Made by a program: the position numbers and the translations under genes. The notes beneath the pieces were generated by a model. It was not told where the DNA came from. It searched no databases and worked only from the letters and a program-made list of their open reading frames with translations. From Cyanophora paradoxa CCMP329 (taxonomy: Eukaryota; Plantae; Glaucophyta): DNA of 64,000 bases. This document shows, piece after piece, positions 2,573-37,954 of the stretch (the stretch's first letter is position 1; each line of letters starts with the position of its first letter). The stretch lies in assembly GCA_004431415.1 (NCBI GenBank), contig QPMI01000434.1:342278-406277 (forward strand), written 5' to 3'.

Positions 2573-2604
<32 letters not shown>

Positions 2605-5363: not shown

Positions 5364-5706
5364 GAATTACGATAGCAAATGTTCTATATATAAGCTTAAG
5401 AAGTACCGTAGTACGACCAGATCAATCAATTACGATTCGATGACCATCAAGAATTACGACCAGCGCTGGCCGCAGAGCTAGCCAGCGAGACAAGAATTAC
5501 GACCACCATCAGGATCTCTTGCGGTAGAGCCAAGCCAAGCTCTAAGATCTAAGCTCCAAGATCCACATGTACAAGACACCGCCCAAGGTCTACCGAGCAC
5601 TGCGGCAGCGACCCGAGACCTCCACATGCAGTTTAAGAATTGCGCGGCAGAAGCCGGTAGTCTGACACAAAACCCGAAGTCTGATAAGAACTATACGAAT
5701 ACGATC
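5364..5706. repeat. Cluster of AATTACGA motifs
   Basis: Four exact copies (about 5365, 5428, 5452, 5495) plus degenerate ones; shares AAGAATTACGACCAGC with the cluster at 9.7 kb. Confidence 0.6.
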
Positions 5707-9669: not shown

Positions 9670-10076
9670 TTACGACCAGCTAAGAATTACGACCAGCTAA
9701 GAATTACGACCAGCTGCAGGGAGCTAGCCGGCATTTATATATAATTACGATCAGAGCTAAGCAAAGAAGTTGAAGATTACGATGCTCGGAATCACATGAA
9801 TTATAATTACGATGCTCGCAATTACGATCCTTCTCTAGACCTGCCTTGAGCGCAGGGGCGCATGCGGGAGAGGAAAAGTAGGGGGAATTACGATGCTTGC
9901 AACTGGAATTACGACGCTCGCTTAAGCTTTGGGGGGAATTACGATTCACCTAGACCTGCATGCCGGCGCCGTGGATTTACGATCGTCTAGAGAAGACTGA
10001 GAAGACGACTGAGAAGAATTACGATTTCGATCGCCTATCGCCCGCAATTACGATCATCGGATGCCCGGAATTACGT
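9667..10076. repeat. Dense AATTACGA motif cluster (~14 copies, including a triple tandem GAATTACGACCAGCT)
   Basis: Read directly from the sequence; abuts the truncation point of the Fanzor fragment. Confidence 0.75.
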
Positions 10077-11686: not shown

Positions 11687-12149
11687 GGCGCCTTCAGCCG
11701 CTTTTAGGGTGGTGCCTCTAGCAGGCAAAGCGCCCTCTTCTTTTTCTAGTTAGCTAGCAAATGGACACGAACTAACTCACAGTTAGCTGGGCAGCCTAGT
11801 TCCCAAGTAGCCAACGCGGGTAGGATAGTCCGACTGTCAGCAGGCAGATAGAATCCCCTTTCCGAGTCCCTTTTTCAGCCAGATGCAATTCCGTAATTTA
11901 TCTGGATCCCGTCCCCAGTGGTCATACTGCACAACCCCAATCGTCATGACAGAAAAGTGGTCAGACGGCCATCATGTACAATTACAGGAAGAATTACAGG
12001 ACTGAGGAGTACAGCATCAGGGTGAAAAAGCCAAGGCCTTCTAAACTTGAAAACATAGCCGCTGTACAAAAGTTGAAGGCCCGGCCCCTGCTGTGCATCA
12101 AGACTTGACAGATCAGACACATACGCATCGAAGGCCTGCTGTGCATCAA

Positions 12150-12376
12150 GACTGCTTGTGTCCGAGGAGGGCATCGAAGTGCGTGCACGAAGATCAGAAG
12201 TCACATCGTCCTCGCTCCGCCACAGGCTCGTGATTGTCTTGGTCTTCGTGAAGAACATCATTCCTGGCGTTACGTGTGGGTGTGAGGCTTGGCCGGGACG
12301 GGGGGAGGGAGGGGGCGGAAGGGGGGAGAGGGGGGAGAGGGGGAAGGGAAAGGAGGGGAAGGGGGGGGGGGGGGGG

Positions 12377-12412
<36 letters not shown>

Positions 12413-14613: not shown

Positions 14614-14760
14614 GTCAGGCTGCCGTTCGAATTGGGCGCCGAGCTCGCGGCTGCCCGGCCGCAGCTGGAGAGGTCCGGTCCTATAAAGGAGTGTACCCGT
14701 CGATCGAGCGCACCGCTGCGCACGGCTGCGCACCGCTGCGCACTGTTGGACAGCTACGAG

Positions 14761-17700
14761 ATGCGGAGGAGGAGCGGCGCCGCGGAGGTCGCTGCCCTGT
14801 TGCTTGCCGTCCTGGCGGTCGCCGCCGCGCAAGCGCCGACAATGACGTCGGTTCGTCCGGGCCCCAACGCTTCTCCTATGCGCTCTATCCAGAACGAGCC
14901 GATTGCGGCCCTCTACGTCGCACCCCGCCGCGATGTCGCCGGCAGCCCACTTGTCTCTCGACGCCCGCTCGGCGGGCGCCTACGTCGCATGCGTTGCAGT
15001 GTGATTGGCCTCCTCTAGGGCGCCGCTTGACGCTCATGCGGCGCTGTCGCCTCTAGTTCTTGGGGCGGGCTGCTGTCGTACGAACCGAGCGCGTGCTGAC
15101 CGACCCACGCCAGAAACTCATTGACTCGCCGCTGAAAACAATTCGCTTTCTGCCGTGCGTGTCGCGTTCTGCACGTGGGTCGGTCGATCTGGTTCTGACG
15201 GGTTCTCTTGCGCAGCTCGCCCGGCTTTGACGTGAGCTGCTTGCACCTCAACCTGCTCTGCGTGCCCGGCGGCTGATCGCTATGATACGCGCAGCTCACA
15301 TTCGCGCGGAGTCAGCGGAATCAAGTCTATCGCAGTTTGGACGGGGGCATCACCTGGACCAACGAGATGGCACGCATCTTGGACGACGAAGGGCAGGAGG
15401 CCCAAGGAATCAGCGCCATTTGGATCAACCCCATCGATTCGAAGCGGGCGCGCGGACTCCCGCCGGCTTCGCGCCCGGCGGCGCGCTCGGCCCCCTTGCC
15501 TTATCGTGCGCCTCACCGCCGCAGATGTTCCTCGTGGGCTACGGCACTACCCACTGGCTGACAATCGACGGTGGCGAGAAATATGTTCCGATCCGCACGT
15601 CCCTCCACATCCAGTCTCTGCGGTGGCACCCGCGGCAGGTGGACTGGGCGCTCGCCTCCGTCATCGCTTCGTCCTGCTACGGGGAGGCCGGCCCGATGCC
15701 CCCCTCGGGCGGCGAGGGCTGCAACATCCAGCTGCACCTCACGCAGGTTCGCCGGGCCAGGCGAGCGCACGCGCCGGTGCCTCGCTGCCCGCCCGAACGC
15801 CTCGCAGGACGCGGGCCGGACCTGGCGGCAGGTCTCCTCCTACGTGATCGGCTTCTCGTGGGGCATGCCAGACGCCCCCAACTACTCCGATACGCTCGCC
15901 TTCGTCTGCGGGACGAAGGACGGCTTCCGCAAGGGCAACCAGGACTTCTCGCAGTGGGACATGAACGCCGAGGTCCGCCGCACGGACAACCTCTGGAAGT
16001 CCGAAGGCACCGCCGTGCCGCGTGCGCCTGCGCCCAAGCCCCGCACCGCTCCGATGCCCTTCCTGACCCCCGGACTGCCTGCAGACGGCACTGCCTTTCT
16101 GTGGGTCGAGAGATTCCTCTTCGTCGGCCTCGTGCGCTAGCCCTCCGGGCGGCACGCGCTCTGCCCGCCCTCGCCCGCCTCACGCGCGCCCTGCCCCTCC
16201 GTCGCGCCGCAGCTCAACCCGCTGGAGCCGCAGGAGATCAAGCTGAAGGTGCGGGGTGGTGGGATCGATGGCTGTTTCCGCGCCCCGCGGCCTCCTCAGC
16301 GCGGGGAGCAGGTCAGCCGAGACAACGGGAAGACCTTCGACGATGCGCTCTTCCCCTTCAGGCTGAGCGAGGCGGGGTACACGGTCCTGGACACGAGCCA
16401 AGGAGCCGTCTTCGTCTCCGTAGCCCACTCGTGCGAGCGCGACAGCGGCAACGTCTACCTCAGCAACTCCGCCGGTGCAGCGGGTCCGCGCGGAGGCGCA
16501 ACCCGGGGGCCTCACCTCCTTCGCAGGAAACCGCTACAGCCTGGCAATCCGCGGGGTGCCGAGGAACGCAGTCGGCAAGACCGACTTCGAGAAGGCGAGC
16601 GGCGCCGGTACTCCGCCCCTTCCCTCTGTGCTGACTTTGTGGTTCTCCGCGCCCAGATCAAGAGCCTCGAGGGCGTCTATGTGGCCAACACGTTCGGGAG
16701 CGGCCGCCTGGGCCCGTACTTCCCCCCGGAGGGCGGGCAGGAGCGGCGCCGCCCGCTCCGCACGCGCATCTCCTTCAACAAGGGGTCTTTTTGGATGAAG
16801 GTGCGGCCGCCCTTTGTCGACGCGAACGGCGCGCCGTATGTGGACAGCGACGGCACGCCCTGCGAGTCCGTCTGGAAGAACCCTGAGAACGTTCCCGAGG
16901 TGCCCGACGATCTCGAGCCCCCTGCCGCTCTAGATCTCCTTAGTTCCCTCGCGCAGGACTCGGAGTGCCAGCTGCAGCTCCACATGGCGGCGGAGGGTGC
17001 GCCGCTCTCACGGCGCTGACTGCGGGACCGCCGGCCGGCCGCGGCCTCTGAAGCCGGCTGCAGACAAGTATGCGCCGATCTACTCGCACCCGAACGCGAC
17101 GGGCATCGTCATCGCGACGGGCAACGTGGGCTCCTACCTCCAGGACCGCGACGAGCAGGCGCGCCTCGCCCTCGCCCCGAGCCGGCGTTGCAGCGCGCCG
17201 CGCGCGAGCCCCGGGCCCGCGCAGGTCAACACGTTCCTCTCCCGCGACGGCGGCCTCACATGGTGCGGAGCCTGCAGGGAGACCGCAAAGCGTTTTGAGC
17301 GCTGAGGCTTCTTTGGCAGGACGGAGATCGCGAAGGGGAGCCACGTGTACGAGTTTGGGGACCACGGCTCGCTTCTCGTCGCTGTGCCCAACCTCGTCGC
17401 CACCAAGACCCTCAAGCGCGCCCCGCCGGGCCCGCGCCCCGCGCTGCGGCCGGACTGGGCCCGTCTGACCGACTCAAACGGCCCGCTGCAGGTACTCGTG
17501 GGACGAGGGGAAGACGTGGCGCAACTTCGACTTCAGCGACGTCGACGTCTCCGTCGACAACGTCGTCGCATGTGCGCGCTCCACCGCTTGCGCTTTCCTT
17601 CGTGCCCTGATCCCCTGCAGCGCCGCACGCGGTGGAGAGCGATTTCGTCCTGTACGGGTCCCGGGGCGCCCAGGCGAGCCGGCCCGCCCCTTTGCTGACG

Positions 17701-19605
17701 CCCGGGCGCCGTTGAGTGATCCCCGGCACCCCAGGGCGTCATCGTGCACGTCGACTTCTCCACTCTGCACATGCGCATGTGTACGCGGGATCGCCGCTGT
17801 TCCATTACAGCTTAGCGTGCCGCGCTTCTCGGCCGACCGCGCCGCGCAGGCAAGGGCGTGGACGCGCCGAACGCCCCGGACTCGGACTACGAGACCTGGA
17901 CTCCGGGCGCGCACGACACCGAGGTGCGGGCGGGCCGCGCCCCTGCACCCGGCTGGCACTCACGCCCGGTTGCCGGCAGTGCGTGCTTGGCCACACGATC
18001 ACGTACGTGCGGAGGAAGCGGGACAGCGAGTGCGACAACCCGGAGACCCAGCAGCGCAAGGCGCGGCGCCGCCCCTCGCGCCCCTCGCCTCGCCCCGCTC
18101 AGCGCCCGCCCGCAGATCTCGCGGAAGACCTGCGCCTGCACCGAGGCGGACTTCGAGTGGTGCGCCGCGTCGTGGCCGGCGCTTCTTGAAGTCAGCGCTG
18201 ACTGCCTTCCAGCGCGTACGGGTTCGAGCGGGACTACGACCAGGGCCCCTGCAAGGTTCCTTCTGGCTCTGCCCCCGCGCCCCCCGGACCGCGCGCCCAC
18301 GCGGCATCCGTGCAGCCGCTGTGGCCGGTGCAGAACAACATCCCGATCGACTGCCCGGACGGCTCCACCTTCTTCGTCACCAACGGCTACCAGGTCCGCT
18401 CCGCGAGCCGAGCCAGCCCACACGCGTCCAAGCCGACCGAAGCCAAGTCTTAGCCTAGTCGAGCTCTAATCGCCCCCTCTCACGTCGAGGGCGGTGGCAG
18501 CGGGTGGCGGGGGATACGTGCGACATCAACGACCCGAGCGTCTCGAACGAGTTCCGCCGCATCCACGAGCCCTTCTCGACGCAGGTGCGCCCATGCAGAA
18601 CAGAGCAAGGCCGCCGGGCTGCGCTGGGCTCTCCATTTGCCTCGATTGAAACGCCCGAACCCCTTATCTTTCGCCCCCGTCCTCACCGCACTTGCGGCGC
18701 AGTGCCCGACGCGCGGCGGCCACGGCTGGCTCGTCTTCCTAGTCGTCTGCTGCGTCCTCGGCGCCGCCGCCGCCGCCGGCGCATTCCTCTACCGCTACCG
18801 CAACTCGGACAGGTCGGTCATTCTCACCCACAACCCTCCCCTCGTCCTCTGCCTCATCCCGCGCGGCAGTCTGGGCGCCGTGAAGGAGCTCTGGAGCCGC
18901 TGGGAGGCAAAGCTGGGGCAGGCATCCGCCGGCCGCTTCTCCCGCGTCCGCTACTCGGGGTCCGCTTGTATTGACTTGAAGCAAACGCCGTATAACAAAG
19001 CTAACATTTAGCGTCGCCATCCCGGTGCAGGCTGAGCGGGGCGGAGGGGGCGGAGGGCCTGCTGGACGACGACATGGACGCGGAGGCGAGCGCGGAGCCG
19101 CTGCCAGAGCCCACCTCGAGCAACGCCACGTGCGCCCCCGCGTTCATTCCCTGCTTCAATCCGCGCTGCGCTGCGCTGCGCTGTGCTACGCATGGTGGGC
19201 TGACGTGAAAGCAGGTACTCCTTTGCCGGCGGCGCGGGCCGCCGGCCGGGCCAGCAGGCCGCCCCGACGGTCGCGAGCCTGTCCGCGGCGGCAGCGGCCG
19301 GCGCCGGCTCAGGCCCCGCGACCGCAAGCCCCAAGGCCCAGCCGGCCGGAGCCGCAGCGGGGGCCTCTTCCCTCTTCGACATAGGCGACTTCGGGCAGCT
19401 GACAGCGGCGGCGGCCCCGGGGCCCGCGCCCCCCCTACCGCCCCCGCCCCGGACGAGGCCCGCCGTCGCGGGGATGTCGATGGCACCCGCGGCCGCGGCG
19501 GGGCCCTCGGGACCCCCGGCGCCGCCCTCGCCCCCAAGGACGGCCATGCCGCCCGCGGGGGCCAGCCTTCTCGACGACGACGTGCTCGGGAAGGGCTCGA
19601 GCTGA
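14761..19605 (+). CDS. VPS10: Vps10p-domain sorting receptor (sortilin/VPS10), multi-exon
   Basis: Signal peptide; Asp-boxes (SLDGGITW, SRDNGKTF, SRDGGLTW, SWDEGKTW); YEFGDHGSLLVAV; 10CC module (CVLG..YVRRKRDSEC, CACTEADFEC, GDTC); TM segment WLVFLVVCCVLGAAAAAGAFLY. Confidence 0.88.
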
Positions 19606-19877
19606 GGGCCGCACTGCGGCACAGCGCACGCTCCCGAGTCCTCCTCCTCCCCGCGCAGGCCTGAATTGCGCCTGCCCCTGTAATATCTCCTGCAGATTCT
19701 AGAACTTCGGAAATTCAGTTACTCTCAGAGGCCAGACATTACCTGCAAATCATCATGGCATCATCTCCATGTACACTTTAGAATGCAAAAATCCAAGTTC
19801 GGGACTGAATTCGAAGTTGAGTGATCATCGGATGCAATTATACACGCTATTATAATTCGTAGCCGTAGCGGCCGAGG

Positions 19878-20692
19878 CTACGGCGCGGTCCATGGCCTGC
19901 TGCGCAGGAACGCGGCGGGCTCGTAGGCGGCGACCCCTGCGCACCCCGTGAGCGAGGGGTCCGCGCAGTTGAAACGAATGGTGCGGGTGGCGCACCCTTC
20001 AAAACGCGGATGGTCGCGCCTGGGCCGATGCCGAAATCTGATATGCACTTGATGCTGCCCAGCTCTATCCACAATCGACGGCCTTCGAACAGCATGATTT
20101 GCTGCGGCTGCTTGAGCTCGAATTCGCCTGTCGGAGCGATAAGTGACAAGAACGGGCGAGGGGGGCAAAGATGTGCGTACGTTCTATCAATTGTATAAGA
20201 TACATAATCGAGCAATGGCCTGTGATTTCGATCTTGATCTCCTTTGTGGGGGAAACTCTGCACGTGAAGCAGTGAGCTGCCGCACGCCGCAGCGCTAGCA
20301 GCCCCTCTGCGATGCGGCAGCTCACTTCTTCACTTTGCCGCCCTTCCCCTTGCCTGCACGTGAAGCAGTGAGCTGCCGCACGCCGCAGCGCTAGCTAACC
20401 CCTCCTCGATGAATGCACTGACCTTTTCCCTTGCCGCCTTTTGCCTCCTTCGCTTTCTTCAAGGCGGCAAGGGGAAAGGTCAGCGCATTCATCGGAGAGG
20501 GGGTAGCTAGCGCTGCGGCGTGCCTTATCAGCCTCGGTTTCAAGCTCGGGGATGTCTGCCGTCCGACAGCGTCAGAGCGCCCAGCTCAGGCACAGAGTTC
20601 ATATCTAAAGCGAACGAACCTGGTATAAATGACGGATTCGGCCCTATGACCGTGAGTGGTCCCTTCCAGACGCTGGTGCGCGGGCGGTCCAT
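19878..20692 (-). CDS. Small protein with Lys/Gly-rich linker and C-terminal ubiquitin-like domain, multi-exon
   Basis: Manual splicing gives MDRPRTSVWKG...KAKEAKGGKGKGKGKGGKVKKVSPTKEIKIEITGHCSIMYLIQLIE...QIMLFEGRRL...ISDFGIGPGATIRV. Confidence 0.55.
20378..20523. repeat. 63-bp inverted repeat (5 mismatches, 20-nt loop) across two introns and an exon
   Basis: Arms 20378-20440 and 20461-20523. Adjacent identical 42-bp direct repeat at 20258-20299 and 20354-20395. Confidence 0.9.
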
Positions 20693-21031
20693 CTTCTAAC
20701 GCGCCCCTCTGTAGCGACGCGCTGAGCGCTGACCGTCTCTCGCTTAGCTATGGATTCTGGCGGTTCGTCAGGCGAGCCTCCGCTGTCTGTTGCAGATCGC
20801 GAATCCTCGGCTTGCGAATCGTTCGTGCAGCGGTAGGACGTTCGTGGAGGCGTCTAGCAGCTGCTATGAATCTTTGTGCAGGGTGGCGCAGGAGCGGCCG
20901 AGGGAAAGCCTCTTTTGGATTGCGGTGCCTGGGTACGGCCGCTCTTCGTGCGCGACTCGGGAACGCGGCTGATTGAGTGCCGGACACACTCTAGCAGCGC
21001 AGAAAAAGAAGGACGCGCACCCCAGCGTTCG

Positions 21032-24010
21032 ATGGCGGCCGCGGCGGCTCCGCCGCCAGCCGGTCCGCCAGGCTCCGCTCCGTCCGCGCAGGCGCTTGTT
21101 TCGCGGGACGCGTTCCTGGACCCTGCCTTCGACCCCAGCACATTCGTCTCCGACCTGCGGAAGCATGTGCCCCTGGAGCAGCTCCGCAACGAGGTGCGTT
21201 CGCCGCCAACCCTCCAAGCGCGTCCGTGGCAGGGCTGACCGCGTGTTCCGCGCGCCGCAGCTCAACAAGCACTTCCAGTCCTTGCGGAATGAGGTGCGGT
21301 CGCTCTCGCTCATCGCTCCTCGCGGCCCGCTGACCCGCCCGCAGCTGCTCGAGCTCATCAACCGGGACTTCGACCAGTTCGTCTCGCTGTCGACCAACCT
21401 CGTCGGCGCGGACCGCATGATAGCGCAGCTAAAGCAGCCACTCAAGGTTCTGCGCGAGGACATTGCGGTGAGTGCCTCGGCGCGCATGGCCATCGCTGCC
21501 GCGGTCTGACTTGCCGGTTCGCGCGCAGGGCGTCCAGGATGCGGTGGTGGAGCAGATGCGAGCGCTGCAGGGCAAGCTGGACGAGCGCAAGGAGCTCGCC
21601 GAGCAGCGGTCGTACCTGCAGCTCTTCATCAACATCGCCACCGTCGTGCAGCACATCGAGGAGCGCCTGCGCTCCGACGAGTGGGAGGGCTCGGGCGGGG
21701 GGCGCCCCGCGGGCATCGACGACGTGCGCCGCTCCGCCCGCGGCCGGCCGCCCCCGGCTCGCACCTCACGCCGTCGCGCAGACGGGCTTCGACGTGGACG
21801 GGCGGGAGCTGGACGAGACCGGCATCATCGTGCCGGAGGGCTCAGCGAACAGGGAGCTGGCGGCAAGCCGTCTGATCGAGCGCGTGGCGAACGAGTACAA
21901 CAGGCTCGACTTCTACCTGAAGCGGGCCAAAGACTTGCCCTTCGCGCGGTCCCTCGACACGGTCCGCTCGCCTGGCCCCCGCTCCCGATCGCCTCCGACG
22001 CCGAGGGGCCGGCGGGCGTGCAGAGGGTGCTGTTCATCGAGAAGACGATCCGGGACAGGCTGGAGGAGACGTTCGCGGCGGGCCTGGAGAGCGGGGACCA
22101 GCAGGTCCTCTCCCACTGCCTGCGGGCCTTCGCCGCCATCGACGCGACCTCCCACGCCGAGAACCTCGTCCGCAAGCTCTGGGTCCAGCCCGCCATGCAG
22201 AAGGTCCTACCTGCCACGGCCCTGCGCCCCCGGCGCCCGCTCAGCCGGGCGCCGCAGATCATCCGGAAGGAGCGCTTCGAGCGGGCGAACGAGGGGCTCG
22301 CCGCCATCTACGACGACATCATCCGCTACGTGCAGGACAAGTTCGAGTGCGCCGCCGCGCCCTTGCGCCTCTCCCCGCGCCCTCGCTGCACGCTCGGCTC
22401 ACCGGCGCCGGCCCGGCAGCACGCTGATCGAGCTCACGGGAGGGGAGTCGGCGCAGTCGTCCTCGGGGGGCGTCCGCGGCTTCAACTTCCTGGCGAACAG
22501 CCTGTGGGCCGAGGTGGAGGAGGTGCTCTCCAACGCGACCCCCTTCGTCTTCGCGACGGGCATCCCGGACTCGTTCCACCAGAACTACCTCCTCTCCATG
22601 GCCTTCCTCGACCGCGTCGAGCGCTTCTGCAAGACGCGCGAGTCGGTGCAGGCGTTCCGCAACCACGCCGCCTACAGCCGCTTCCTCCGCCGCTGGGGCC
22701 TCCGCGTCTACTTCCAGCTCCGCTTCTACGAGGTCTCCTCCAAGCTCGACGCCGCCCTCTCCCGGGGCGTCGAGGTTCTCGCCTCGCCCTCCCCCGCCGG
22801 CTATCGCCTCGACGCCGGGGCCGCTGTGGAGGAGGCGACGGAGCGCTGCCTTGCCCCCGAGGTCTTCCTCCCCATGCTCGCCCACCAGTTCGCCAAGCTC
22901 GCCCTCCAGTGCATCGCCCGCTACAAGAACTGGCTTACGGCCGGCCTCCAGCAGGCCTGTCCCCGGCCCCGGCCCGGCCGACCGTTACCGCGGCGGCGCT
23001 GAGCCCCGGCGCAGGTGCTGAGCGGCGCCCAGTCTGGCGCCGCGGCGCCGCAGGCGGGGTGGGCCGCCCTCGCCCCCGAGCAGTACATCCTGGCGTACCA
23101 CGACACGGAGCTCCTCCTCACACGCGTCCGCCCCCGCCCCGCGCGCCTTCGCCCCGCCAGGCCGGCCCGCGACGTCGGCTCACGGCGCGTCTCGCGCAGT
23201 TCCAGTCGCGGGTCCCGGCGGCGCTTCGGAAGCGGATGGAGGCGCTCTCGGGCAAGCTCCCCGAGGACTTCGGCGAGCGTGCGCCCCCGCCCTCTCCCCC
23301 TTTGCGTCGCATCTTCCTCGCGGTCGACCGCCGACCGCAGGGCTCTGCCGGGAGTCGGCGGAGAGCGTGCGGGCAGTGCTGCCCGAGCTCTCCAAGATCA
23401 TCACGTCCCACGTGCTCTCCAAGTGCCTCGAGAACCTGCAGGCCGTGCGGGGCGTCACGGCCATGTACCGCATGACGAACAAGCCGCCGCCGACGAAGCC
23501 CTCGATGTACGTCGCGACGATTCTGCAGCCTCTGGGCCAGTTCGCGCAGGAAGTCGAGGCCTCCTCGCTCGTCTCGCGGGCCGTGCTGCAGTCCTGGACG
23601 CTCGCCGCCGTCACCTCCGTCGCGGACCGCTACAACGAGATGACCACGGAGCTCATCACGACCGTCCGCAAGACCGAGAGCTCCCTCAAGCGCCTTCAGG
23701 CCAAGAAGCCGGCCGCCGGCCCCGCCGCCCCCGCCTCCGCCCAGGCCATGGGCGACACCGACAAGGCCCGCCCCGCTTCCTTCCCCCTCTGGCCTTTCCC
23801 CACCCCTACCATTCCATCTCACGGCGCCTCGCCCCGCAGATCTGCCTGCAGCTGTACCTGGACGTGGAGGAGCTGGGGCGCCTGATGAAGAAGCTGGGCG
23901 TGGAGGCGGCGTCGCTGGCCTCGTTCGCCTCCCTCCACGATCTCGTCTACGCCGAGAGCGAGAAGTTCCTGCCGCTCCTCGCCCAGCAGGCTCCCCCAGC
24001 CGCCCCCTAG
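21032..24010 (+). CDS. COG2: Conserved oligomeric Golgi complex subunit 2, multi-exon
   Basis: FDPSTFVSDLRKHVPLEQLR..LLELINRDFDQFVSLSTNLVG, FATGIPDSFHQNY, RWGLRVYFQLRF, YRMTNKPPPTKPSMYV, DTDKICLQLYLDV. Confidence 0.9.
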
Positions 24011-24114
24011 CCAGCCGCCGCCCCCCGCGCACCGCATCTCGTCTAAGTACAGCTCACGTGTCTACGCTGCACGCATATTCACATCTCGCCTCGCCGAGTA
24101 CATTTAATCCGCGC

Positions 24115-25999
24115 CTACAAGCTCGGTGCGAGGGGCGCTGCCGCCGCCGCCGGAGGCAGGGCGGGGAACTTGTTCTCGACGAGGTAGCGGAAGCACTGCA
24201 TGATGTAGTTCTTCTCCTGCCGGATCTCTTTCGACAGGAGCTTCTGCAGCAGCGTCCGCGGGTGGGTCGGCGCCGGCGGCGGCCGCGGCGGCGCCGGCTT
24301 CGCCCCCGGCTGCGCAGCTGAGGTGTTAGGGCTGCGATGAGGAAATGATGTTACGCGAAAAGCACCTGGAGGTCGTGGGAGAAGCCGCAGCGGCCCCCGA
24401 GCTTGCAAAAGCCCCGCGCGAAGTACTTGCACGGCGGCCGCTGGTGCCTCCTCTCGCCGGCCTGCTCGGGGCGGCCCGGCGCCCGGCCCGCCGGCGCCGG
24501 CTGCTGCTTGCTGCTGTCGGTGCTGGTGCTTCCTGTTGGAGGGCGCAACGGCTCCGTGTGCGCTTCTCCGTGCCCGGCCGGGCCTGCCGGGGCGGGCGGG
24601 TGCACGGGACCGGCCTCCGGCCGGCCGCCCGCGTGCGGGACTTTCCGGGGAGACGCCTTGCAGCTCTCTGTTGATCCGTCGAGGTCCGTCAGGGAGCCCT
24701 CCACATGGGCGGGCGCATCCTTAAAGCTGTACTCCTCGGGCGCCCCGTCCGAGTCCCTCTCCTCGCCCTCCTCCCCGTCAAAAAAGTGCTCGTGGGACTG
24801 GCTGACTGCTGGCGAGTCCGGCGGCGGATGCGGGTGTGGGTGCTCGTGGGGGGGATGTTCCAGGGGCGGCGGCTGCTTGACGGACTCTGGGGGCGCCGGC
24901 TGGAGCTGCTGCGTCACAGGCGGGGTCGGCGCCCCGCCCTCCTCTCCTCGACCGCCGCCTAAAATCTGGGATCAGCGCAAGCTGAAATCATAAGAATGCA
25001 TCAATGACACCTTCGTAATGGTCGGGATTCCCGTGGTAGCCGCTATGACTGTAGCCGCCCCGCCCGCCCCGCTGCTGGTAGCTGCCGCCGCGAAGCCCGC
25101 CGCGCCCGCGCCATCCCCCGCGCCCCTCTTGGAGGAGGATGTGTGTCTGGTCCGGCTCGCGCTCGTGCTGGTGATGCTGGAAGCCGCCGCGCCCGCCGCG
25201 CCCGCGCCCCCGGCCGCGCTGATCGCGGTTGAAGAGTGGCCTGCGTGAGCGGTCGTCCACAATCTCTCCGCGAGCCCTCCTGTTCTCGTCTTCATGTTTC
25301 TGCGCCGCTCGCATCGTTAGCTGAAGCAACGCCTCGGCAAGCGATAGCGGCGTGCCTTGCGCTCCACGTTGGATTCGCTGGGCCAGTGCTTCCTGCGCTC
25401 TGCGCGCCATCGCTCGATTTCTTCCGGCGTGTCCAAGATGATCGGCTTGCGAGACGAGCTGCGTTGACGCTTTAGACGATCAAACGTGTCTAAATACGTG
25501 CCGCGCACCTCACGCCGTTGTGAGCGTCGTGGACGTGCTCGAAGACGACTTTCTTGGATGCGACGAAGCTACAGTCATCGCGAGGGCACTTCACATGCTT
25601 CGCTTTGTGCTCTTCAAGCTGCCGCTGCTGCTGGAAGCCGCGATCGCAGGCCTCGCAGAAGTAATTTTCCCTGCAAGCTCGCGTCAGAGCGAGCAGGCTC
25701 TCTCTGAAAAAACGCGCTCACGGCTCAGGTTCACGTGGCCGCTTCCGCTGCCCGTAATGCGGCGGAGGTGGGTACCCGCCGTACGTGTTGTGGTGCACTG
25801 GCGGATGCGGGGCGTATGGGGGCATGTACGCGCCCGTCACAGGCGCGAGCGACGCTCCGTACAGCGGCGGGGGCTGCGTCCCTGTTAAGAGCGCCAGGCG
25901 CGATCCGATCGCACGGCGCACCGCGGGCGTCCCAAGCAGGCCGTGTCCGCCCAGGTACATCGTGGGGGGAAGCGGCGGAGCGAACGGAGACGGGAACAT
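24115..25999 (-). CDS. NUFIP1: NUFIP1/Rsa1-like box C/D snoRNP assembly factor with CCCH finger
   Basis: DTPEEIERWRAERRKHWPS, CKYFARGFCKLGGRCGFSHD, LLQKLLSKEIRQEKNYIMQCFRYLVEN. Confidence 0.8.
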
Positions 26000-26095
26000 C
26001 GTAGCGGCTGGATGCAGCACCGCGTACCCCTCAAGGCTGCATCCGAGTGCATCGGCGGCATCGCTGCGGCATCAAAGCGCATCCCGGCGCGGGCG

Positions 26096-28257
26096 ATGTC
26101 GGCGAGTCGCGGAACGCCACAGTGGCCCTCATCTTTCGGGAGAGGCGCTTCTCTGCTAGGTCGCAGCGCGACCTCGAGGTCGCTGCTGCGCGACAGCGGT
26201 GTTCCTGCCGGGCACCGCTCGCAAGATGCGGTGGATAGGATAGAAGAAGGGCCCGTGCAGCCCTCGCGCACGTACGGCACCGCTGGCGACTTAGTGGGCA
26301 AGGTGTGTGCGGTGACCTTTGACGCGCCCTTTCGATCTAGCTACCGGCACGGGCGCGCGCGCTGCTATCGGCTAAAGGAGCGCTTATGAACGCTTATTCA
26401 TGCGTGCGCACTGCGCAGGTGCACGTTATCGGCGATGACGAAAGTCGGCCGCTTCTTGACGGAACGCTGGGAGACTTTGAGGGACACTCCACTTTCCTGC
26501 AGAGCTTCTTCAACTCCGTCAACATTCTCTGCGGAGTTGGCATCTTGGCTTTTCCTTTCGCACTCATGAAGAGCGGCTGGGTGGGCTTGCTGTTTATGGC
26601 ATTCCTAGCTATCGTCACAAACTACACCGGCAAAGTGAGTGGCTTGAACAGTGAATGGAAGGCCCAGCTCACCCATACGCAGTGCATTGCATACTGCATG
26701 CAAGCGCAACCGGGGATCCAGAGCTACCCCGAAATAGGGCAGGCGGCTTACGGGGACAAGGGTCGGCCAGGACCCCCAACTTGACGGCTTGCTTTGCCGA
26801 TTTCGTTCCGTGCACAGGCCGGCTTCTGATCTCGGCGATATTATACACCGAGCTTTTCTGCACGTTGTCTCTCTTTTTCATTCTGGAGGGAGACAACCTC
26901 ACTCAGGTTTGCACATGCAGCAGTCTCCTAAACTGCCTACATGCCCTTTACGCCCTTTCGAACAGCTCATCTATCCTCGGATTGGTATCGAGCATCGAGC
27001 AGCGACAAGAAATATGTTCATGGCGTTGACCGCCATTGTCGTCCTGCCAACTTCCTGGTTAAGAGATCTGTCATACCTGTCATACGTTTCTGTTCTTGGC
27101 ATGATCTCGGCTTTCTTCCTTCTGGGAGTTGTTGTGCGTCGCTTTGCTTCGGAGTTTCGGCGCTGAAGACGATGCATCCAATTAGCATTACAGGTCAACG
27201 ATGGCATCACAGGAGGAATGCTCGAGGGGCTGGACCTGTCCGACACAAAGACGTTCCGGTATTTTGTATTTGTTGATTTCAGTAAACTGCACATGCCATG
27301 GGTGTGAACCTTGCCAGAATAATTAATGTGGACAATCTTCCGCTGATGTTCGGATTGGTGTCGTTCGGCTTCGCGGGTCATGCAGTGGTTGGTAGTCACT
27401 CTTATGCTTCTTCTTGCTGCTTACCATCAATTTGAGCAGTTTCCAAACATATACACGTCCATGAAGGACAAGCGCCAGTACAAACGGATGCTCGACTTTT
27501 CATATGTTGTTGTGATGATTGCATACAGCGCAATGGCAGTTTTCGGATGGTTGCAGTATAGGGACGACACAGATCAACAAGTCACCTTGAATCTCCCAGA
27601 AGGGCTTGTTTCCCAGATTGCGACAGCCCTCATCTGCGTAAATCGTGAGCATACGTTGAATTTCCCATGCTTGGTCACGTTGTTAATGGCATACTCCAGC
27701 TATAACCAAGTTCTCCCTCACGCTCAATCCCATCGGCCTTGGGGTGATTATGTGCAGCATGTGGGCTTGCCTTCTGCAGCTGACAGCCGATCAGATTGAA
27801 GAGCTGTTCACTTTCAAATCACCTTTCGGCAATCGGGCTTTCAGCATATGTATCCGGTCTCTCCTCGTATTTTCTTCCCTCATTGTAGCAATGGTTATTC
27901 CATTCTTCGCCTATGTTCTTTCTTTTATTGGAGCATTCATGACGGTGAGTTGACTCCACACAACCCTATCCTGTTCTATTTCCCTGCCTGCATCGACACC
28001 CCATATTTCAGATGGCAGTGTCTGCTGTCTTCCCCGCTCTCTGCTACATGAGGTTATACAAGGGGAAGCTAGGCTGGCACATCTTGCTGTGGAACTGGCT
28101 CGTTGTGATTATTGGTACGATTTGTGCCATTTCTGGGTCCTGGATCGCGGCCGTCCAGATGTGCGTACCTGCACCTTGCCTGAAATTCCAGCGCTTATTC
28201 TTTCGCAGCATGCACGAGTGGCAAAAGAAATCTTCGTGGCAGATTCGACCCTCCTAA
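26096..28257 (+). CDS. AAAP-family amino acid transporter (AVT1-like), multi-exon
   Basis: STFLQSFFNSVNILCGVGILAFPFAL..SGW, SYPEIGQAAYG, LPTSWLRDLSYLSYVS, FPNIYTSMKD; multiple TM helices. Confidence 0.88.
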
Positions 28258-28495
28258 AAATGGGCGCGAGGAGGGCCGCTGAGGCTTCGCCCGACCTTTG
28301 GGACCCGCAGGGGCCCAGGGCTTGACTTAGTAATTTCAATTTTGATTTCAATTTTGATTTCGGAGCTCGAGTTCACGCGTACTACGGTACGTTAAATCGT
28401 GATCGCAACTGCAACAGGGCCCGCCGGGCGCCGGGCCGCCAGCGCCGGATCCGATAGCGCTAGCGAGCTCTATGTGACGATATTGATGAGATGGG

Positions 28496-28546
28496 GTACA
28501 TCGTATACAACCCGAATTCGTGCCCCCGGGCTTGTATACGATGTAC
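28496..28546. repeat. Perfect 15-bp inverted repeat hairpin
   Basis: GTACATCGTATACAA (28496-28510) / TTGTATACGATGTAC (28532-28546), extended by CCCG/CGGG. Confidence 0.85.
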
Positions 28547-28558
28547 TTGCAATTTCAG

Positions 28559-28869
28559 ACACGTGCGGCAAGATCAACTACGGGCTCGGCTCGAAGAGGG
28601 TCTTCGAGTGCCGCCCCGGGTGCGGCTTCCGGGCGGACCGCGACGGCGGCGCCGCGCGGTGCGTGTTGTGTCTATACACGCCTATACACAATCGCTGCTC
28701 CCCCCGCCTAGTCCCGACACGGCCTAGCCACGGCATAATTTTCCGTCTAGGCCTAGGGCCGGCTCGCCCTCCCAGCGCCGCCCGATCGCAATCGTAATCG
28801 TACTCTTGCAGGAGCATCTTCATCCGCTACGGCACCGGCGTGGACGCGAAGCGCCTGCTCGGTTCGTAG
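28559..28869 (+). pseudogene. Second Fanzor/TnpB 3' fragment with one intron
   Basis: Removing GT-AG intron 28659-28811 gives (D)TCGKINYGLGSKRVFECRPGCGFRADRDGGAARSIFIRYGTGVDAKRLLGS*. Confidence 0.75.
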
Positions 28870-29040
28870 CCAGCTAGCGCTAGGCTCCGATCCCCTTTTC
28901 TCCATCAGGGCACCAGTCCCTGCGGGTTACGCTCTCACCCAAACAGCACGGGTACAGTTAAAGCGCTGTAGGTAGGAGGTCCGGCGCGCCCGTAGCGTAG
29001 AAAGAGCTCAAGAACTCAGCCCACGGCAGCGCTAGCTATT
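28870..29040 (+). ncRNA. Candidate omega-RNA-like structured region
   Basis: Nested stems TACGCT(28928)/AGCGTA(28994), ACGGG(28948)/CCCGT(28989), TACAG(28953)/CTGTA(28966); hairpin CAGGG/CCCTG at 28906-28922; directly after the Fanzor stop. Confidence 0.33.
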
Positions 29041-29344
29041 GTTTCTCGTGCTGCTAATCGTATTTTTGTTGGTGGTTCTCCTATTAGTTATTTAGAACGT
29101 CCACAATCAGGAATTGACGCAAAAGCTAGCTAGATCGAGGTGCTCGATCGGTACCGCGTTCATCCAGTGCGCCCAGTTTCACGGATAAGCTGTTCAGCCC
29201 AGCGCAACCAGCGCCCCTGCCGGAGAGACCGCCGGCCTGTTGAACAACAGAATCATCGAGGCGCTCAGCTGCACTTCTGAGTGAACCGCGGTTGCGCTGT
29301 AGCAGCGGGCGGCCGCTGGGCGCTGCGGCAGCGAGCACGCGATC

Positions 29345-32300
29345 ATGGGCCCTGAGGACATGAGCGCGGATGATCTGGCAGCGCCGATCAAGGATACGGC
29401 AGTGCGCATTCGTCAGACCGCATGAACTGCACGTACGGGCAAGAGCGCCGCTCACGCTTCGCGCAGGAGAAGTGGCGGCTGCTCCCTTCGTTCCTGCGCG
29501 TGCGAGGCCTCGTGAAGCAGCACATCGATTCTTTCAACTATTTCACGAGCGTCGAAATAAAGAAGATCGTGCAGGCGAACCAGCGCGTCACATCGGATGC
29601 GGACCCTACCTTTTTCCTCGAGTGCGCCCACCACAGTTGACGCGCTCAATGCACAAAGCCCTTTTGACGCTTGTTCAGGTACACAAATATCAGCATCGGC
29701 AAGCCTAGTGTCGAGGAGGACCTGATCGTCACAGCTATCGCGCCACACGAATGCAGACTGCGGGTGCGGGGATAATTGCGCGCCATCGCAATGCGTGCGC
29801 TGTTTTGACCGTTATTACCTCAGGATATGACGTATGCAGCACCCATAACAGTAGATGTCCGCTACACCCGCGGTAAGGAGATCGTCGTCAGGAAGGGTGT
29901 CGTTGTTGGACGCATGCCCATCATGTTACGGTCCTGCAACTGCGTTCTTACAGGCAAGTCGGAGGCCGAGCTGGCAAAGCTCAAAGAATGCCCTCTCGAC
30001 CCAGGTGTGCATTATAAGTGCCTCTAGCTCGTCACAGTTGAATGCTGATTTTTTTCGCCCCGTTGACAGGCGGTTACTTTATTGTCAAGGGGACTGAACG
30101 TGTGATTCTCACCCAGGAGCAACTGTCGAAAAACAGAATCATCATAGAAGAGGACAGCAAAGGCAACATTCAGGCATCGGTGACAAGCTCGACCCATGAA
30201 CGGAAGAGCAGGAGCCAAATTTATTCAAAGCATGGAAGATGTACTTGAAGCACAACACGCTCACTGAAGACCTACCTGTAGTAATCGCAATGAAGGTATA
30301 GGACCTGTTTGTTGCTTGTCACATTGTTGGTAGGAACAGGCACTGATAGAACGTGTGGTCTGTCAGGCAATGGGAGTCGAGAGTGATCAGGAGATTGTCC
30401 AACTCGTCGGAAGTGAACCATTGTATGCAGACGCAATGTCTGCTTCGTTGGAGGACTGTTCATCCTCACGCATCTACACGAGAAATCAGGCACTCGATTA
30501 CATTGCATCCCGCATCAGAAGCTCTGGACCTCGGCGCTTCGGAGGACCTCGCCGCTCCAAAGTTGATGAAGCGCGCGAACTGCTTGCACAGGTCGTGCTA
30601 GCTCATGTCCCTGTCGAGAAGTTCAACTTCAGGCCGAAATGTATCTATGTCGCACTCATGCTCAGGCGTATCATCACCGCAATGAAGGACCCAACTGCCA
30701 TTGATGACAAGGATTACTACGGCAACAAGCGGCTTGAACTGTGCATCCTTATTTCTCTCGCCTGAACTTCCAGTAAATCTCATCCTTCCTCAGGTCTGGG
30801 CAGCTTATCGCACTCCTTTTTGAGGACTTGTTCAAGCGCTTCAACAGCGATTTGAAGCGGAATGCAGATCAGGTTCTCACGAAACAGAATCGTGCCCAGC
30901 AGTTCGACGTGGTGAAATGCATTCGCCCTGACACAATCACACATGGCTTGGAGCACGCCCTTTCAACTGGGAACTGGTCTGTTAAACGTTTTAAAATGGA
31001 GCGTTCGGGCGTGACCCAGGTAAATTCGTTTCTTGCTTGCTGTGGTGTGCCTCCAATTCATTGGACCTGTGCAGGTGTTGTCTCGGCTCTCCTACATTGC
31101 GTGCTTGGGCATGATGACGAGAATTACCAGCCAGTTTGAGAAGACAAGGAAGGTTGCTGGACCTCGCTCCCTGCAGGTACTTTCGAAACAACTTGTTTCT
31201 TAATAGCTTTGACTGTGTTGAGCAGGGTTCACACTGGGCATGGTCTGCCCATCGGACACACCTGAAGGAGAAGCCTGTGGCCTGGTGAAGAATCTCGCCC
31301 TTACCACACATGTAACAACGGATGATGAAGAAGGTCCAATCCTGCGCATGGCATTCAATCTTGGAACCGAGGGTGCTTTTCACCTGTGGGCTTTTCCTCG
31401 AGATTCGAGAGGCTCACCTGTTCTGGCAGATGTGAACACACTTTCTGGTGAGGAGCAGAACAGCCTATCATCCTACCTCGTCATTGTCAATGGTCTCGTG
31501 ATTGGAGTGCATAGGCGCCCTGCAAACCTTGTCAAGTCTCTTCGTGCCATGAGAAGAAAGGGCTTACTTGGGGAGTTCGTTTCCATTTTCCAGCACGATC
31601 GGCATAGAACAGTGTACATAGCCTCAGATGGGGGACGAGTGTGCAGGCCACTCATCATCGTGCGAAATGGGAAGTCCAGTGTGCTCCCTCGGCATATACA
31701 GGCAAGAAGCAATTGTCCATCAGCCCTTCGCAATCTTGCCTAACATCTGACTGTAAACGCAGGAAGCTGTTGATGGCTATCGCTCTATGCAAGACTTCTT
31801 GAAAGAGGGCCTCATCGAGTACCTGGATGTGAACGAGGAGAATAATGTGGAGATCGCGATGTATGAAAAAGATATTGTCCCAGCAACAACGCATCTGGAG
31901 ATCGAGCCTTTGACAATTCTGGGCGTTGTAGCTGGTCTTATCCCCTACCCCACCATAATCAGTCCCCTCGCAACACGTATGTAGCCAGCACTGCTTGAAC
32001 ACTCTGACTTGCTCACATTTTTCTTGCAGGTACCAGTGTGCGATGGGCAAGCAGGCTATCGGCACTATCGCCTACAACCAAATGAATCGTCTTGACACAT
32101 TGTTGTACCTGCTTGTCTACCCTCAGAAGCCCATGGTGAAGACAAGAACCATCGAGTTCATCAACTTCAACAAGGTGATAAGAAAAAATTCTAGCAATTT
32201 TCAGCAAGTTGACTTCCGTCTTGAACAGCTGGGTGCTGGTCAAAATGCCACGGTGTTCATCATGAGCTACTCCGGCTACGATATTGAGGATGCGACAATG

Positions 32301-33813: not shown

Positions 33814-34267
33814 AGTAGTTTCAACAGCATTTGAACACGAACGAAATAAAATGCAACGAACGTATATCTTGGTACATGTACAACAGGTGCCTGTGCCCGC
33901 GCATTGCGATTGAAATTGTCTTCGAATTGCCAAGTTGGCCTCATGGCCGATCGACAGGGCATGCATTAATAAACTTGAAAGATTGCTCTTTCTACGCTAC
34001 GGGCGCGGCCGGACCTCCCGTTTCAAACTGAACGGAGTTTGCGTCACGCCCCGCCCATTGTTAACTTCTTCCGCCAATGAAATTAGCCCAGCGCAAACTT
34101 GAGCTCGAACTTGGCCTCGTACACAGTGGCGTACACACGCGGCCACAACGGTCACAGTAACGGTCAGCAGGCCGGCTTGCTAGTCAGCTTCCCTCGGCTA
34201 GGCCGGACTAGCTAGCTTCCCGCCATCGCGCACGCCCGAGCGCGAGCATTCCTGCACGCCGCCGTGC

Positions 34268-36267
34268 ATGAAGCAGTCAAAGCGAAAGGAACCCAGCCTC
34301 TGGGATGACGGCTTCGACGAGGCCCGACGTCGGCACCGCTGGCACGGCAAGCGACCCGACAGCAGCAGCTCGTGGGCCGGCAAGGGCAACATGAAGCGTG
34401 TCAACAAGATCACTCAGCAGGCGCGCAAGGCGAAGGAGCCCAAGCTCCCTGACCTCGACATCCTCAAGGGCGAGCACCCCGCGGCAACGGTCCGCTGCCT
34501 GGACACCAGCGGCCGCGCCTACCACGTTCGCCTTGGCGACTTCGTCATCTGTTCAGTTAGCTCAGACACCCAGCTGTGTCCAGAACTCAGCGTCGTTCGC
34601 CCGAAGCCCTTCCATTTCCCGCGCCCAGGTGAAACGATTTTGGCGCGAGTCGAGGGCGAGTTCCCAACACAGACGAAGGCGAAGCGCGGCGACTTCAACT
34701 ACTCCGTCAACGGCGTCATCCTTCGGCGCTTCGTGCGCCCGGAGGACTCCGATGTGAAGGACTGCGGGCTCGGCAGCGTGATCATCAAGGCAGACGGGGA
34801 GCAGGCAGCCGTGGCCATCGCAAACCACCTCATCTACTACTCGAACGTGACGGTCCGCCCGCCGCGCCCGCGCCCCGTTCCAGCGTCCGATGCCCGTGCG
34901 CGCAGGTTCACGCACCCGCGAAGGTGGTGGCCGCGGACGAGTACAAAGCCCTCAACCACGCCGATCCCCACATCTACGTCTGTAAGCAAATCATGACGTT
35001 CCCGGGCGACGGCTCCTTCCAGTTCGACGTCGCCCTCGCCTTCAACGCGAGGCTCAAGCGAGTGGCGAAGAAGAAGATGGCGTGCTTCCTCCGGCCGCTG
35101 TCGAGGCCGGAGGAGCGCGTGGAGGCGATTGGCTACCTTCAGGACGCCGCCGCGAACGCCCTCAAGCGCCGGAAGACCGGGACGCAGCTTGTCAACGTCA
35201 AGATCCCGGTGGCCGGGCCGGCAATGTTGGTCTGCGGCTCTTATGACTCGTTCGAAGTTCTTTTTCCTATCCTCTAACGGTGCGCATCGCAGGAGAACAT
35301 CGTGGCGCAGGTCGCGCACGTCGCCACGCCCATCGACCCGAAGACGGGCCAGCCGATCCCGGTTGACAAGCTGCCGGCGGCGAATCGCTTCGTTATCGAG
35401 CTTCCGGACCGCGAGACCGCTGCTGGTGGAAGCCGCTTCCTTTTTCCCGCTCGCTGTTCTTTTTCCGACCTCTTTGCAGCTGTTCTCGGTCCCTCCGGCG
35501 TGGCGCAAGCGTCCAAGCGCGTCTGCAAGCGGGACGCGGACGGGAAGGCGATCCGGAAGCACAGCGAGATGCAGACCGTCACCGTCGAGAAGGCGTACGG
35601 CGGCTTAATCGTGCCGCGCCACACGGGCTCCCATGACGTCGTCCAGTTCGACGAGCGTGCGCCCGGCCCGCCCTCGCCGCGCCGCTCGCTTACGAAGCTC
35701 TGCTCCTTGGGCGCGGCAGGTCCCGGTCGGATCGTGGCCACGAAGCGCTCGGGCAGGAAAGGTGGGCACGTCACGCTCGAGCTTCCGAGCTACGAGTACG
35801 GCCCCGACGGCGAGCGCATCGCCAGCCTCGCGGGGCCCCTCGCGGCTGTCCCCGTGAAGCGCCCGCGCCGGTGCCGCGCCGGCGCCAACACCGTCGCCAA
35901 GGCGCCGCCTGTCCCGAAGCAGCCCCTTCAGAACCTGCCGCCGCCGCCCTGCCGGCCCCGCCGCCGCCGCCCTGCCGGCCCCCGCCGTCGCCGCCCCGCC
36001 GGCCCCCGCCGCCGCCGCCCTGCCGGCCGCCGCCGCCGCCGCCCCGCCCGCCCCCGCCCCGCCGGTCGCCGCCCTGTCGGCCCCTGCTGCTGCTGCCCCA
36101 CCGGCCGCTGCCGCCCTACCTGCCCCCGCCGCATCCGCCTCGGTCCCCAAGTGCGCCCCTCCCCCTCGCCCCCGCTCGGCTACTTGCTCGCCTAATCCTG
36201 CAGCAGGAAGGATCGCGCGGCACAGCTCGCGGCCGCGGTGGCGGCGCGCAAGAGGGCAAAGTCGTGA
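34268..36267 (+). CDS. Putative BAH-domain protein with Ala/Pro-rich tail and C-terminal NLS-like KRAKS, multi-exon
   Basis: YHVRLGDFV...ILARVE...RRFVRPED...YYSN...HIYVCKQ resembles a BAH domain; could be host or TE-borne. Confidence 0.45.
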
Positions 36268-36308
36268 AGCTGCTACTGAGAATCGCACTATCTAGGTTAC
36301 AAGGTGCG

Positions 36309-36611
36309 CTATGTCTGGTCCAAATCCATTTCGTCTATTTCCCCCTCCGCTAGATCGTCTGCTAGAACCTCTGCTAGGGCCCTATCATCGAAATCGAGCA
36401 TGTTGGCGCCCTCATCCTCCGCCTCCATCTCCTCCTCCGCCTCCTCCTCTGCCTCGGCGTCGTACTCGGCGGTCTCCTCCTCCTCCTCCTCCTCGTCCCC
36501 GCTCTCCTCGGGCACCTCGTCCTCCGGCACCGGATCCCCCTCCTGCAGCTCAATATCCTCGTCGATCTCCTCCTCGTCCGCAGGCAGGGGCACCGCTGCC
36601 CCGCTGGTCAT
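36309..36611 (-). pseudogene. 3' fragment of a GC-rich gene with acidic C-terminus, truncated at the virus junction
   Basis: EEEIDEDIELQEGDPVPEDEVPEESGDEEEE...; GC-rich sequence ends abruptly at about 36610. Confidence 0.4.
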
Positions 36612-37954
36612 AACTGGGAATATCAAGGGAACCGATGGCGCCCCTAAATATACTGCCACTGATATTCTGGCGCTCTACAAAGCGAAGCTGCCGCTGATTT
36701 TCGCGAATCCACGAGTGCTTACATCGATTGTACAGCGCCCAAAGTACGAAGCAACTAACTTAGAAGCTGTGGCTCTGGAACTCTGCGGCTCAGCGACCAT
36801 GGCGGATCTCTACAAACCCACCATAGTAACTGCGTTCGACACGGTTCAAATGTCCCCCGTTTTTATTTCAAGCAACGATGAAGATATTAATGGGATGCTT
36901 GTGCGCGATGCTGCAAGGGCTACCTCGGCTGCGCCCACCTATTTCGAGCCGAAACAAGTCACAGTCGCCGGGAGAACATATTGTTTAATCGATGGTTGCA
37001 TGAGCGGAAATAATTCGCCCGGGTTTGTGGTTACACATTCGCCCGCACTTTATTCGGAAACTCTTGCGAGGAGGAGCTTATCGTGGTCTCGATTACGGCG
37101 GGTCACGTCCAAGACTCTGATAAGGCGACATCTGGATATTCGTACGACACTATGAAAAATTGGGGATCGTGCAATGGATGCTAAGCGCCACAGGATCGCC
37201 AATTCTCAGCATGTTCTTAGAGTCGAGTGATCTAAACGCCCACGTAAAGCTACTGGAACTTTTACCCAGAAACGATGATCAGAATTACGATCGCTACTAT
37301 AAGCTGAGCGTTCCTTTACCGAAAGATAAAATGACCCTCGATACTATCACAACGACGCACTTGCAATATTTAGAAACGGAAGCGCTCGCGTTTGTTTCCG
37401 CACAGCAAACGTATTTTAATGCGATGTATTCAGTGCTGACGATGAATATATCAGAGGGAGACGTTCCCATTATTAATCTGTCCGGGTGCACAGATGTAAG
37501 TGTACCCCCGGAGTCTAACTGGGTGCCGCTCGATAATAGCGCCTTTATTGCGGAATTTGGCACAGCTTCTGATGCCCGCTGGTCAAATGCTACGGGGTGG
37601 GTGGGATTTACCAACCCGCCGCAAGGTAGTAGGTCGGGAGGCAATTATTTACGCATTGATTTTCCGCGTCTGTTTATGCTTTCCTCTATAAAAATGAAGC
37701 CGGCTGCGAATGGAAACTACATTAAAACGTTTGAGATCGATTACCAATTAACTCCGGGAGTTTCTGCGCTTGTCACATACACAGAAGCCGGCGCGACGAG
37801 AGTGTTTACCAATGCAAATCAAATAGCCGGAAGTGTAGAGCCCGACGAACATTTCTTAGCGAACCCGAGATCTGTGAGAACCCTCGTAATCTGGGTGCTC
37901 ACGACGAACGTAGCTTCGGCATGCCGAATTGATTTCGAGGGCTACTACGTGTGA
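36610..37954 (+). CDS. Patatin-like phospholipase fused to a C-terminal discoidin (F5/8C) domain; 5' truncated, frameshifted
   Basis: PKYTATDILALY, PKYEA, DAARATSAAPTYFEP, LIDG; C-terminal YLRIDF..YIKTFEIDY..CRIDFEG. The GGGxRG and GxSxG motifs are missing. Confidence 0.75.

Follow-up and report, generated by a model that had tools for sequence, protein, structure and literature searches.

Fanzor is the eukaryotic form of the nuclease TnpB. In the alga Chlamydomonas reinhardtii, the Fanzor1 families CRe-1, CRe-2 and CRe-3 are non-autonomous Helitron2 elements present in tens to hundreds of copies (Bao & Jurka 2013, PMC3627910). Their copies are frequently truncated at the 5' end and almost all retain the 3' terminus, a pattern called 3'-overabundance that was read as one-ended transposition from the 3' end, and most truncated copies lie between target-site duplications (TSDs) 7–19 bp long (PMC3627910). 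In bacteria, TnpB-like nuclease-dead repressors (TldRs) and orphan omega-RNAs are examples of a TnpB-derived guide RNA near a promoter (PMC10705468). No paper in the searchable literature names both Fanzor and Cyanophora. Fanzor and glaucophytes co-occur in a single research paper and the preprint of it, which found no Replitrons in glaucophytes. Here, we describe a locus in a 64,000-nt stretch of Cyanophora paradoxa CCMP329 DNA (contig QPMI01000434.1, positions 342,278–406,277; this whole stretch is called the window), which carries two Fanzor remnants. Remnant 2 lies between RPC2 and an amino-acid transporter gene and is probably what ordinary decay has left of a nuclear Fanzor transposon with an intron, a dead copy that has lost its 5' part. 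A preceding reading made from the letters of the DNA (the sequence-only reading) had recognised both remnants and had proposed that their 3' modules are preferentially retained at promoters as a dispersed guide-RNA repertoire or a co-opted regulatory system.

The assignment to the TnpB/Fanzor family rests on exon A of remnant 2 and its paralogues. Exon A alone matches Pfam PF07282 (Cas12f1-like TNB) with 22.3 bits (E=1.5e-4), which is under the gathering score of 26.3, whereas paralogues 81–87% identical to it reach 40–45 bits, above the gathering score, with E-values down to 1e-11. A word search with the exon-A open reading frame (ORF) finds six EukProt proteins that are 76–87% identical, among them P0001, the model of the remnant 2 locus, and the EukProt cluster look-up gives EP00741 Cyanophora paradoxa as the source of the paralogues. 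Gene models P0003–P0006 continue upstream into RuvC-II and the zinc ribbon (...VIVPEFRTSQM...CEAWTSKTCGxCGK...). A HMMER search with P0005 returns 2541 relatives, the full-length ones being 400–650 aa long and carrying HTH_OrfB_IS605, OrfB_IS605 and TNB. The RuvC-III motif of the window copy, DRDGGAAR|SI, aligns with DRDVNGARNV of P0007 and DRDHNAARNI of the full-length relative P0009. P0007 is a fused model of 1839 aa that ends in an almost complete Fanzor similar to remnant 1; with P0008, another Cyanophora paralogue, it shows that several diverged Fanzor lineages exist in this genome. A search with a shorter piece of P0007 added no further full-length Cyanophora models, and protein searches found no full-length protein of subfamily A, to which remnant 2 belongs (the longest model is 156 aa). 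The nearest full-length relatives come from metagenomic contigs of same-strand ORFan genes and from fungi. The best Protein Data Bank (PDB) sequence match of P0007 and P0009 is mimivirus ApmFz2 (9B0L; E=4e-13 and 5e-23), and SpuFz1 (8GKH) gives no match at E<=1 in the same search. Judged by the PDB sequence search, the family appears closest to ApmFz2 and IS607-type TnpB (Fanzor2), rather than to SpuFz1-type Fanzor1.

Remnant 2 encodes ~51 residues from the C-terminal end of a TnpB/Fanzor nuclease (Table 1). Its 5' truncation point is where homology to fuller copies begins, and of the zinc-ribbon cysteines it retains a single one from the first CxxC pair and both of the second. Only C-terminal pieces have been kept in the window, as had been proposed: tblastn of P0001–P0009 matches just the two remnants, and with P0005–P0009 it finds no RuvC-I Asp, no RuvC-II Glu and no WED or REC lobe there. 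By its sequence, remnant 2 is a fragment that cannot be a nuclease, because RuvC-I, RuvC-II, WED and REC are all missing.

The peptides quoted in the sequence-only reading are found on the strands given for them: DRDGGAAR at 28636 and IFIRYGTG at 28816 (both +) in remnant 2, DRDFNGA at 9606 and IMLRVASG at 9509 (both -) in remnant 1. So is the intron position that they were said to share. In frames checked by script, each intron interrupts an Arg codon (CG|G, phase 2) right after DRDxxxA; the intron of remnant 1 is 70 nt long and is bounded, like that of remnant 2, by GTGCGT..CAG. The two copies are well separated, as about one third of the aligned residues of their exon A peptides are identical (28 aligned, BLOSUM62 local score 40) and their DNA is alignable over no more than ~30 nt. 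Two diverged paralogues with one intron position indicate that this position is a real, inherited feature. Thus, the family is an old, intron-bearing one, and this genome contains two or more of its diverged subfamilies. A 'cag' precedes each remnant and was considered as a splice acceptor. At remnant 2, a fuller copy reads ...GAGGCCTGGACCTCGAAGACGTGCGGGGT (EAWTSKTCG) into 28563 in both DNA and RNA, with no intron, and the 'cag' of remnant 1 falls within the homologous codons I-H-S; both candidates were rejected.

Table 1. Coordinates of the Fanzor-derived features in the window
Feature	Position	Strand	Description
Gene model P0001 (tig00020554_g10793.t1, 75 aa)	28491-28869	+	Annotated model of the remnant 2 locus
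Remnant 2, exon A	28561-28658	+	TCGKINYGLGSKRVFECRPGCGFRADRDGGAA plus CG of the Arg codon; second CxxC pair of the zinc ribbon and RuvC-III DRD
Remnant 2, intron	28659-28811	+	Spliceosomal, 153 nt, GTGCGT..CAG, phase 2, Arg codon CG|G
Remnant 2, exon B	28812-28869	+	(R)SIFIRYGTGVDAKRLLGS; stop codon TAG at 28867-28869; P0001-P0005 have the same C-terminal peptide
Right-end tail of the element	28870-29007	+	Non-coding, high-copy repeat with a fixed 3' boundary at 29007
Remnant 1	9480-9666	-	Diverged subfamily; exon A 9666-9584, intron 9583-9514, exon B from 9513
Third tail copy	33985-34018	-	Terminal 34 nt, 97% identical to 28975-29007

The tail of remnant 2 is a high-copy repeat. The sequence is contained in 20 sequencing runs, all labelled as one organism. 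Contigs of the DNA run X2 and of three RNA runs from three studies (X15, X16 and X17) were placed on positions 26800–31200, with depth summed over all contigs at >=92% identity, so that it stands for a rough copy number only. On this measure, the depth of X2 is 137–148 over both flanking genes, which serves as the baseline, and rises to 2546 at 28564–28710, to 9039 at 28711–28857 and to 23517 at 28858–29004, with 1674 just beyond. This amounts to ~18x for exon A, ~65x for exon B and ~170x for the tail, and bears out the claim that 3' parts of the family are much commoner than 5' parts. The loose ends of X2 contigs behind 29004–29007 disagree with one another, and 29007 is therefore the common 3' boundary of the copies. 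Loose ends before the element lie at 28563, 28803, 28814, 28879, 28900 and 28954; the 5' ends therefore vary. The terminal 19 nt of the element occur twice in the window (0.02 expected by chance), the second time in the third tail copy, upstream of which the sequence is unrelated to the element. The metagenome and viral collections gave one match each to these 19 nt, both of them chance 19-mers without flanking similarity. RNA contigs of all three runs also contain a different genomic copy, whose tail begins at the position corresponding to 28954, immediately behind an unrelated frame that ends in ...PEEDFDGEW-TAG.

A different arrangement could produce such a gradient, namely if the tail, as a unit of ~30–150 nt, were an independent short non-autonomous element that shares the right-end recognition sequence, the depth profile being the sum of two element classes. 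The large step in depth between exon B and the tail agrees with this, as do copies that start at 28900, 28954 and 28975 after unrelated sequence, one of them directly after the stop codon of ...PEEDFDGEW*. However, each run has six or more contig variants in which the tail follows the Fanzor C-terminus directly (loose ends before 28879), the 5' starts are scattered instead of falling at one left end, and neither a left-end repeat nor a terminal inverted repeat was found for the element, which makes two separate classes unlikely. A candidate left end at 28270–28416 (depth 13,638) was rejected, as a single-copy contig spans 28278–28491 and the depth of this 147-nt bin of DNA reads is due to a 12-mer tandem repeat (ATTTCAATTTTG) at 28333–28370, a satellite-like motif that is abundant elsewhere in the genome. 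LINE-like retroposition is an unlikely source of the 5' truncation as well: the copies retain the intron (contig 28607–28734, ~10x), and the absence of a poly(A) or simple-repeat tail also disfavours it.

The 3' region had been expected to be transcribed, and RNA contigs do cover the tail in all three RNA runs. These runs are genuine RNA, since all introns of the two flanking genes are removed in them and kept in X2. A joint from 28657 to 28811 (GT..AG), which skips 153 nt, is present in contigs of X15, X16 and X17 and absent from X2; the relic intron is therefore spliced, which it still can be because its splice signals are intact. The upstream gene encodes a protein with an Aa_trans domain (amino-acid transporter) and ends with a stop codon at 28255–28257. 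A 2004-nt contig of X16 runs from exons of this gene through 28209–28657 and across the joint to 28811, and remnant 2 thus lies in a read-through 3' untranslated region (3'UTR) of the transporter gene. RPC2 contigs of X15 and X17 start at 28978, a point 30 nt into the repeat at which a 31-mer graph is bound to break; accordingly, RNA also crosses 29007 into the RPC2 leader. RNA depth over the tail is 86–100x that of the neighbouring gene and shows the same gradient as DNA (86–100x, ~25x and 1–14x for tail, exon B and exon A), which fits passive transcription of many copies. The RNA contigs carry no information on strand, transcript start or transcript end. At the locus itself, RNA fits passive read-through from the transporter gene and does not reveal a discrete guide RNA.

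The annotated spliced model P0001 and the splicing of its intron could be taken to mean that remnant 2 is a functional small gene, i.e. that a 75-aa zinc-ribbon peptide (g10793) was exapted from Fanzor. In the window its frame is interrupted by 1-nt indels, at 28510 and 28527, that the reads do not share; with these corrected, the ORF is intact. All four runs, DNA and RNA, have one extra base after 28255, 28419, 28438, 28510, 28527 and 30233, and these are probably single-base assembly errors of the window. Directly upstream of the truncation point, at 28496–28546, there is a near-perfect inverted repeat with 18-nt arms and a 15-nt loop (GTACATCGTATACAA...TTGTATACGATGTAC); the depth of this stretch is ~2x, and the hairpin together with the remnant locus seems to have been duplicated once. 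The first 24 residues of the model have no relation to Fanzor and derive from a hairpin repeat, its RNA is continuous with the 3'UTR of the upstream gene, and sister models have unrelated N-termini, as happens when an annotator stitches fragments. An exapted gene is therefore barely credible.

Two structural claims about the region behind the stop codon do not hold as they were made. The motif GCTAGCGCTAG, described as following the stop, is literally present at 28873. Most other copies, represented by six contigs per run, read ...TCGTAGCTA|GGCTCC at this place, and the motif is therefore owed to a 10-nt insertion private to the window copy. In the window there are 23 occurrences of GCTAGC (~10 expected), clustered in intergenic DNA. 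As for the nested stems that were proposed for both remnants, the palindromic tail of remnant 1 stands out against shuffled sequence (z = -5.2), and remnant 2 does not: exon B with the tail (28811–29007) folds with -72.7 kcal/mol, compared with -71.0 kcal/mol for shuffles (z = -0.36). Rfam has no family for the tail, either at the gathering threshold or at E<=1.

By analogy with TnpB and Fanzor, the tail would be the scaffold region of an omega-RNA, and a 16-nt complementarity between the start of exon B (28817–28832) and the end of the element (28990–29005) could be a candidate closing stem, as seen in a single sequence. On this basis the right-end modules (~150–200 nt, >100 transcribed copies) might be dispersed omega-RNA genes that serve the remaining Fanzors in trans. 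Tails and flank-derived guides would be loaded on an intact or nuclease-dead Fanzor made elsewhere, and the complex would target neighbouring DNA for homing or repair or, in a TldR-like manner, regulate the downstream gene. Besides the complementarity, the abundance of the tail in DNA and in the RNA of three runs, the X15 and X17 contigs that pass from 28978 over 29007 into unique flank and the near full-length Fanzor model P0007 in the proteome are all compatible with such a repertoire. Yet RNA depth merely follows DNA copy number, strand and transcript ends cannot be read from the contigs, the fold of the window copy equals that of shuffled sequence, the third tail copy lies antisense and 3' of a gene, and the 3' bias has a mechanistic precedent. 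TldRs require a full-length RNA-binding protein and a promoter-matching guide (PMC10705468), whereas the protein at this locus has been destroyed: it is a 51-residue stub, and the searches returned no full-length subfamily-A protein that could take its place. We hold an omega-RNA repertoire, whether it acts in homing, repair or regulation, to be very improbable.

The position of remnant 2 does not require a function either. RPC2, an Rpb2-family polymerase subunit whose N-terminus presumably matches POLR3B, starts at 29346, 339 nt past the end of the element and in the same orientation as remnant 2. The suggested promoter bias comes from two co-oriented cases, for which the chance probability is ~0.25, and the third tail fragment in the window is located 3' of RPC2, ~170 nt past its stop codon (33813), in antisense orientation. 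Because the spacers between genes are short, any surviving fragment adjoins some gene. Nothing found here indicates selection for the position of the remnant or lends support to a retention of 3' modules at promoters for guide-RNA or regulatory purposes.

A decayed transposon copy would account for the locus as follows. The family generates or retains far more 3' ends than 5' parts, most likely, we infer, because copying begins at the 3' end or aborts before it reaches the 5' end. One such copy would have landed in the short spacer between the transporter gene and RPC2, and of it there remain the ~51 codons of the C-terminal end, an intact intron and a non-coding right end of ~140 nt that stops at 29007, now carried in the read-through 3'UTR of the transporter. 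The distance of 339 nt to the RPC2 start codon would then reflect a compact genome. Retention of 3' ends needs no selection; Fanzor1 of Chlamydomonas shows the same pattern, where it was ascribed to one-ended transposition (PMC3627910).

Several points weigh against this account. Its copying mechanism is one that we infer, and the precedent is a Helitron-borne Fanzor1, whereas the protein here is nearest Fanzor2. The flanks of neither copy in the window have a common word of >=7 nt that could be a TSD, although two old copies are weak evidence in this respect. The copy numbers that define the gradient are rough, as stated above, and tail RNA at 86–100x the neighbouring gene could mean that some copies are transcribed for a reason. 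The truncation points pose a further question. P0001, P0002 and remnant 1 (9666) are independent truncated copies from two subfamilies, and their starts lie <=~7 codons apart, around TSKTCGxCG(K/A)I, a site that holds a GTGCGG direct repeat. This near-coincidence could be due to chance or to a microhomology hotspot.

Other sequences in the surroundings of the remnant were noticed on the way. In the RPC2 leader, an AT-rich segment of 91 nt (29034–29124) matches a 767-nt DNA contig at ~10x nuclear depth that runs into very AT-rich sequence on both sides and looks like a small organelle-derived insert (cyanelle or mitochondrial). Arrays of a TCGTAATT motif occupy two intergenic regions on the minus strand (5365–5500 and 9668–10070); TCGTAAT occurs 24 times on both strands (4.5 expected), and GTACTACGGTAC is common to 5403–5415 and 28378–28390. 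The TCGTAATT arrays and GTACTACGGTAC could represent promoter motifs or fragments of a further repeat family. GC-rich blocks (65–72%) at 1–3900, 12000–26000, 34000–37000 and 45000–49000 alternate with blocks of 40–50% GC that hold RPC2, the transporter gene and an endogenous virus region. In base composition the Fanzor remnant resembles the GC-rich blocks.

By itself, the locus is ordinary transposon debris; its interest lies in the family behind it. More than 17 small Cyanophora gene models (the clusters of P0001–P0006) are transposon stubs and not genes, and ~170 tails with a defined end make a concrete and inexpensive test set for the regulatory idea. In its C-terminal zinc ribbon and DRDxNAxRN motif the family is similar to ApmFz2 (PDB 9B0L, PMC11832414), and, as in Fanzor2 and IS607-type TnpB, terminal inverted repeats and TSDs are lacking. 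Unlike ApmFz2, the window copy is a 51-residue remnant, the Cyanophora genes have spliceosomal introns and the omega-RNA is putative; unlike in IS607-type elements, no serine recombinase is seen beside the window copy, which is truncated. Compared with CRe-1/2/3 of Chlamydomonas, the window copies have no TSD of 7–19 bp, Helitron-type ends are not recognised and the host is a glaucophyte. Both, however, come from the nuclear genome of an alga and have a Fanzor gene of several exons separated by introns, and both combine a constant 3' terminus with variable 5' ends and 3'-overabundance. The Cyanophora family thereby adds an intron-bearing, Fanzor2-like, high-copy family in a third lineage of Archaeplastida, and suggests that 3'-overabundance, which was initially described in Fanzor1 carried by Helitrons, may be more general among Fanzor elements.

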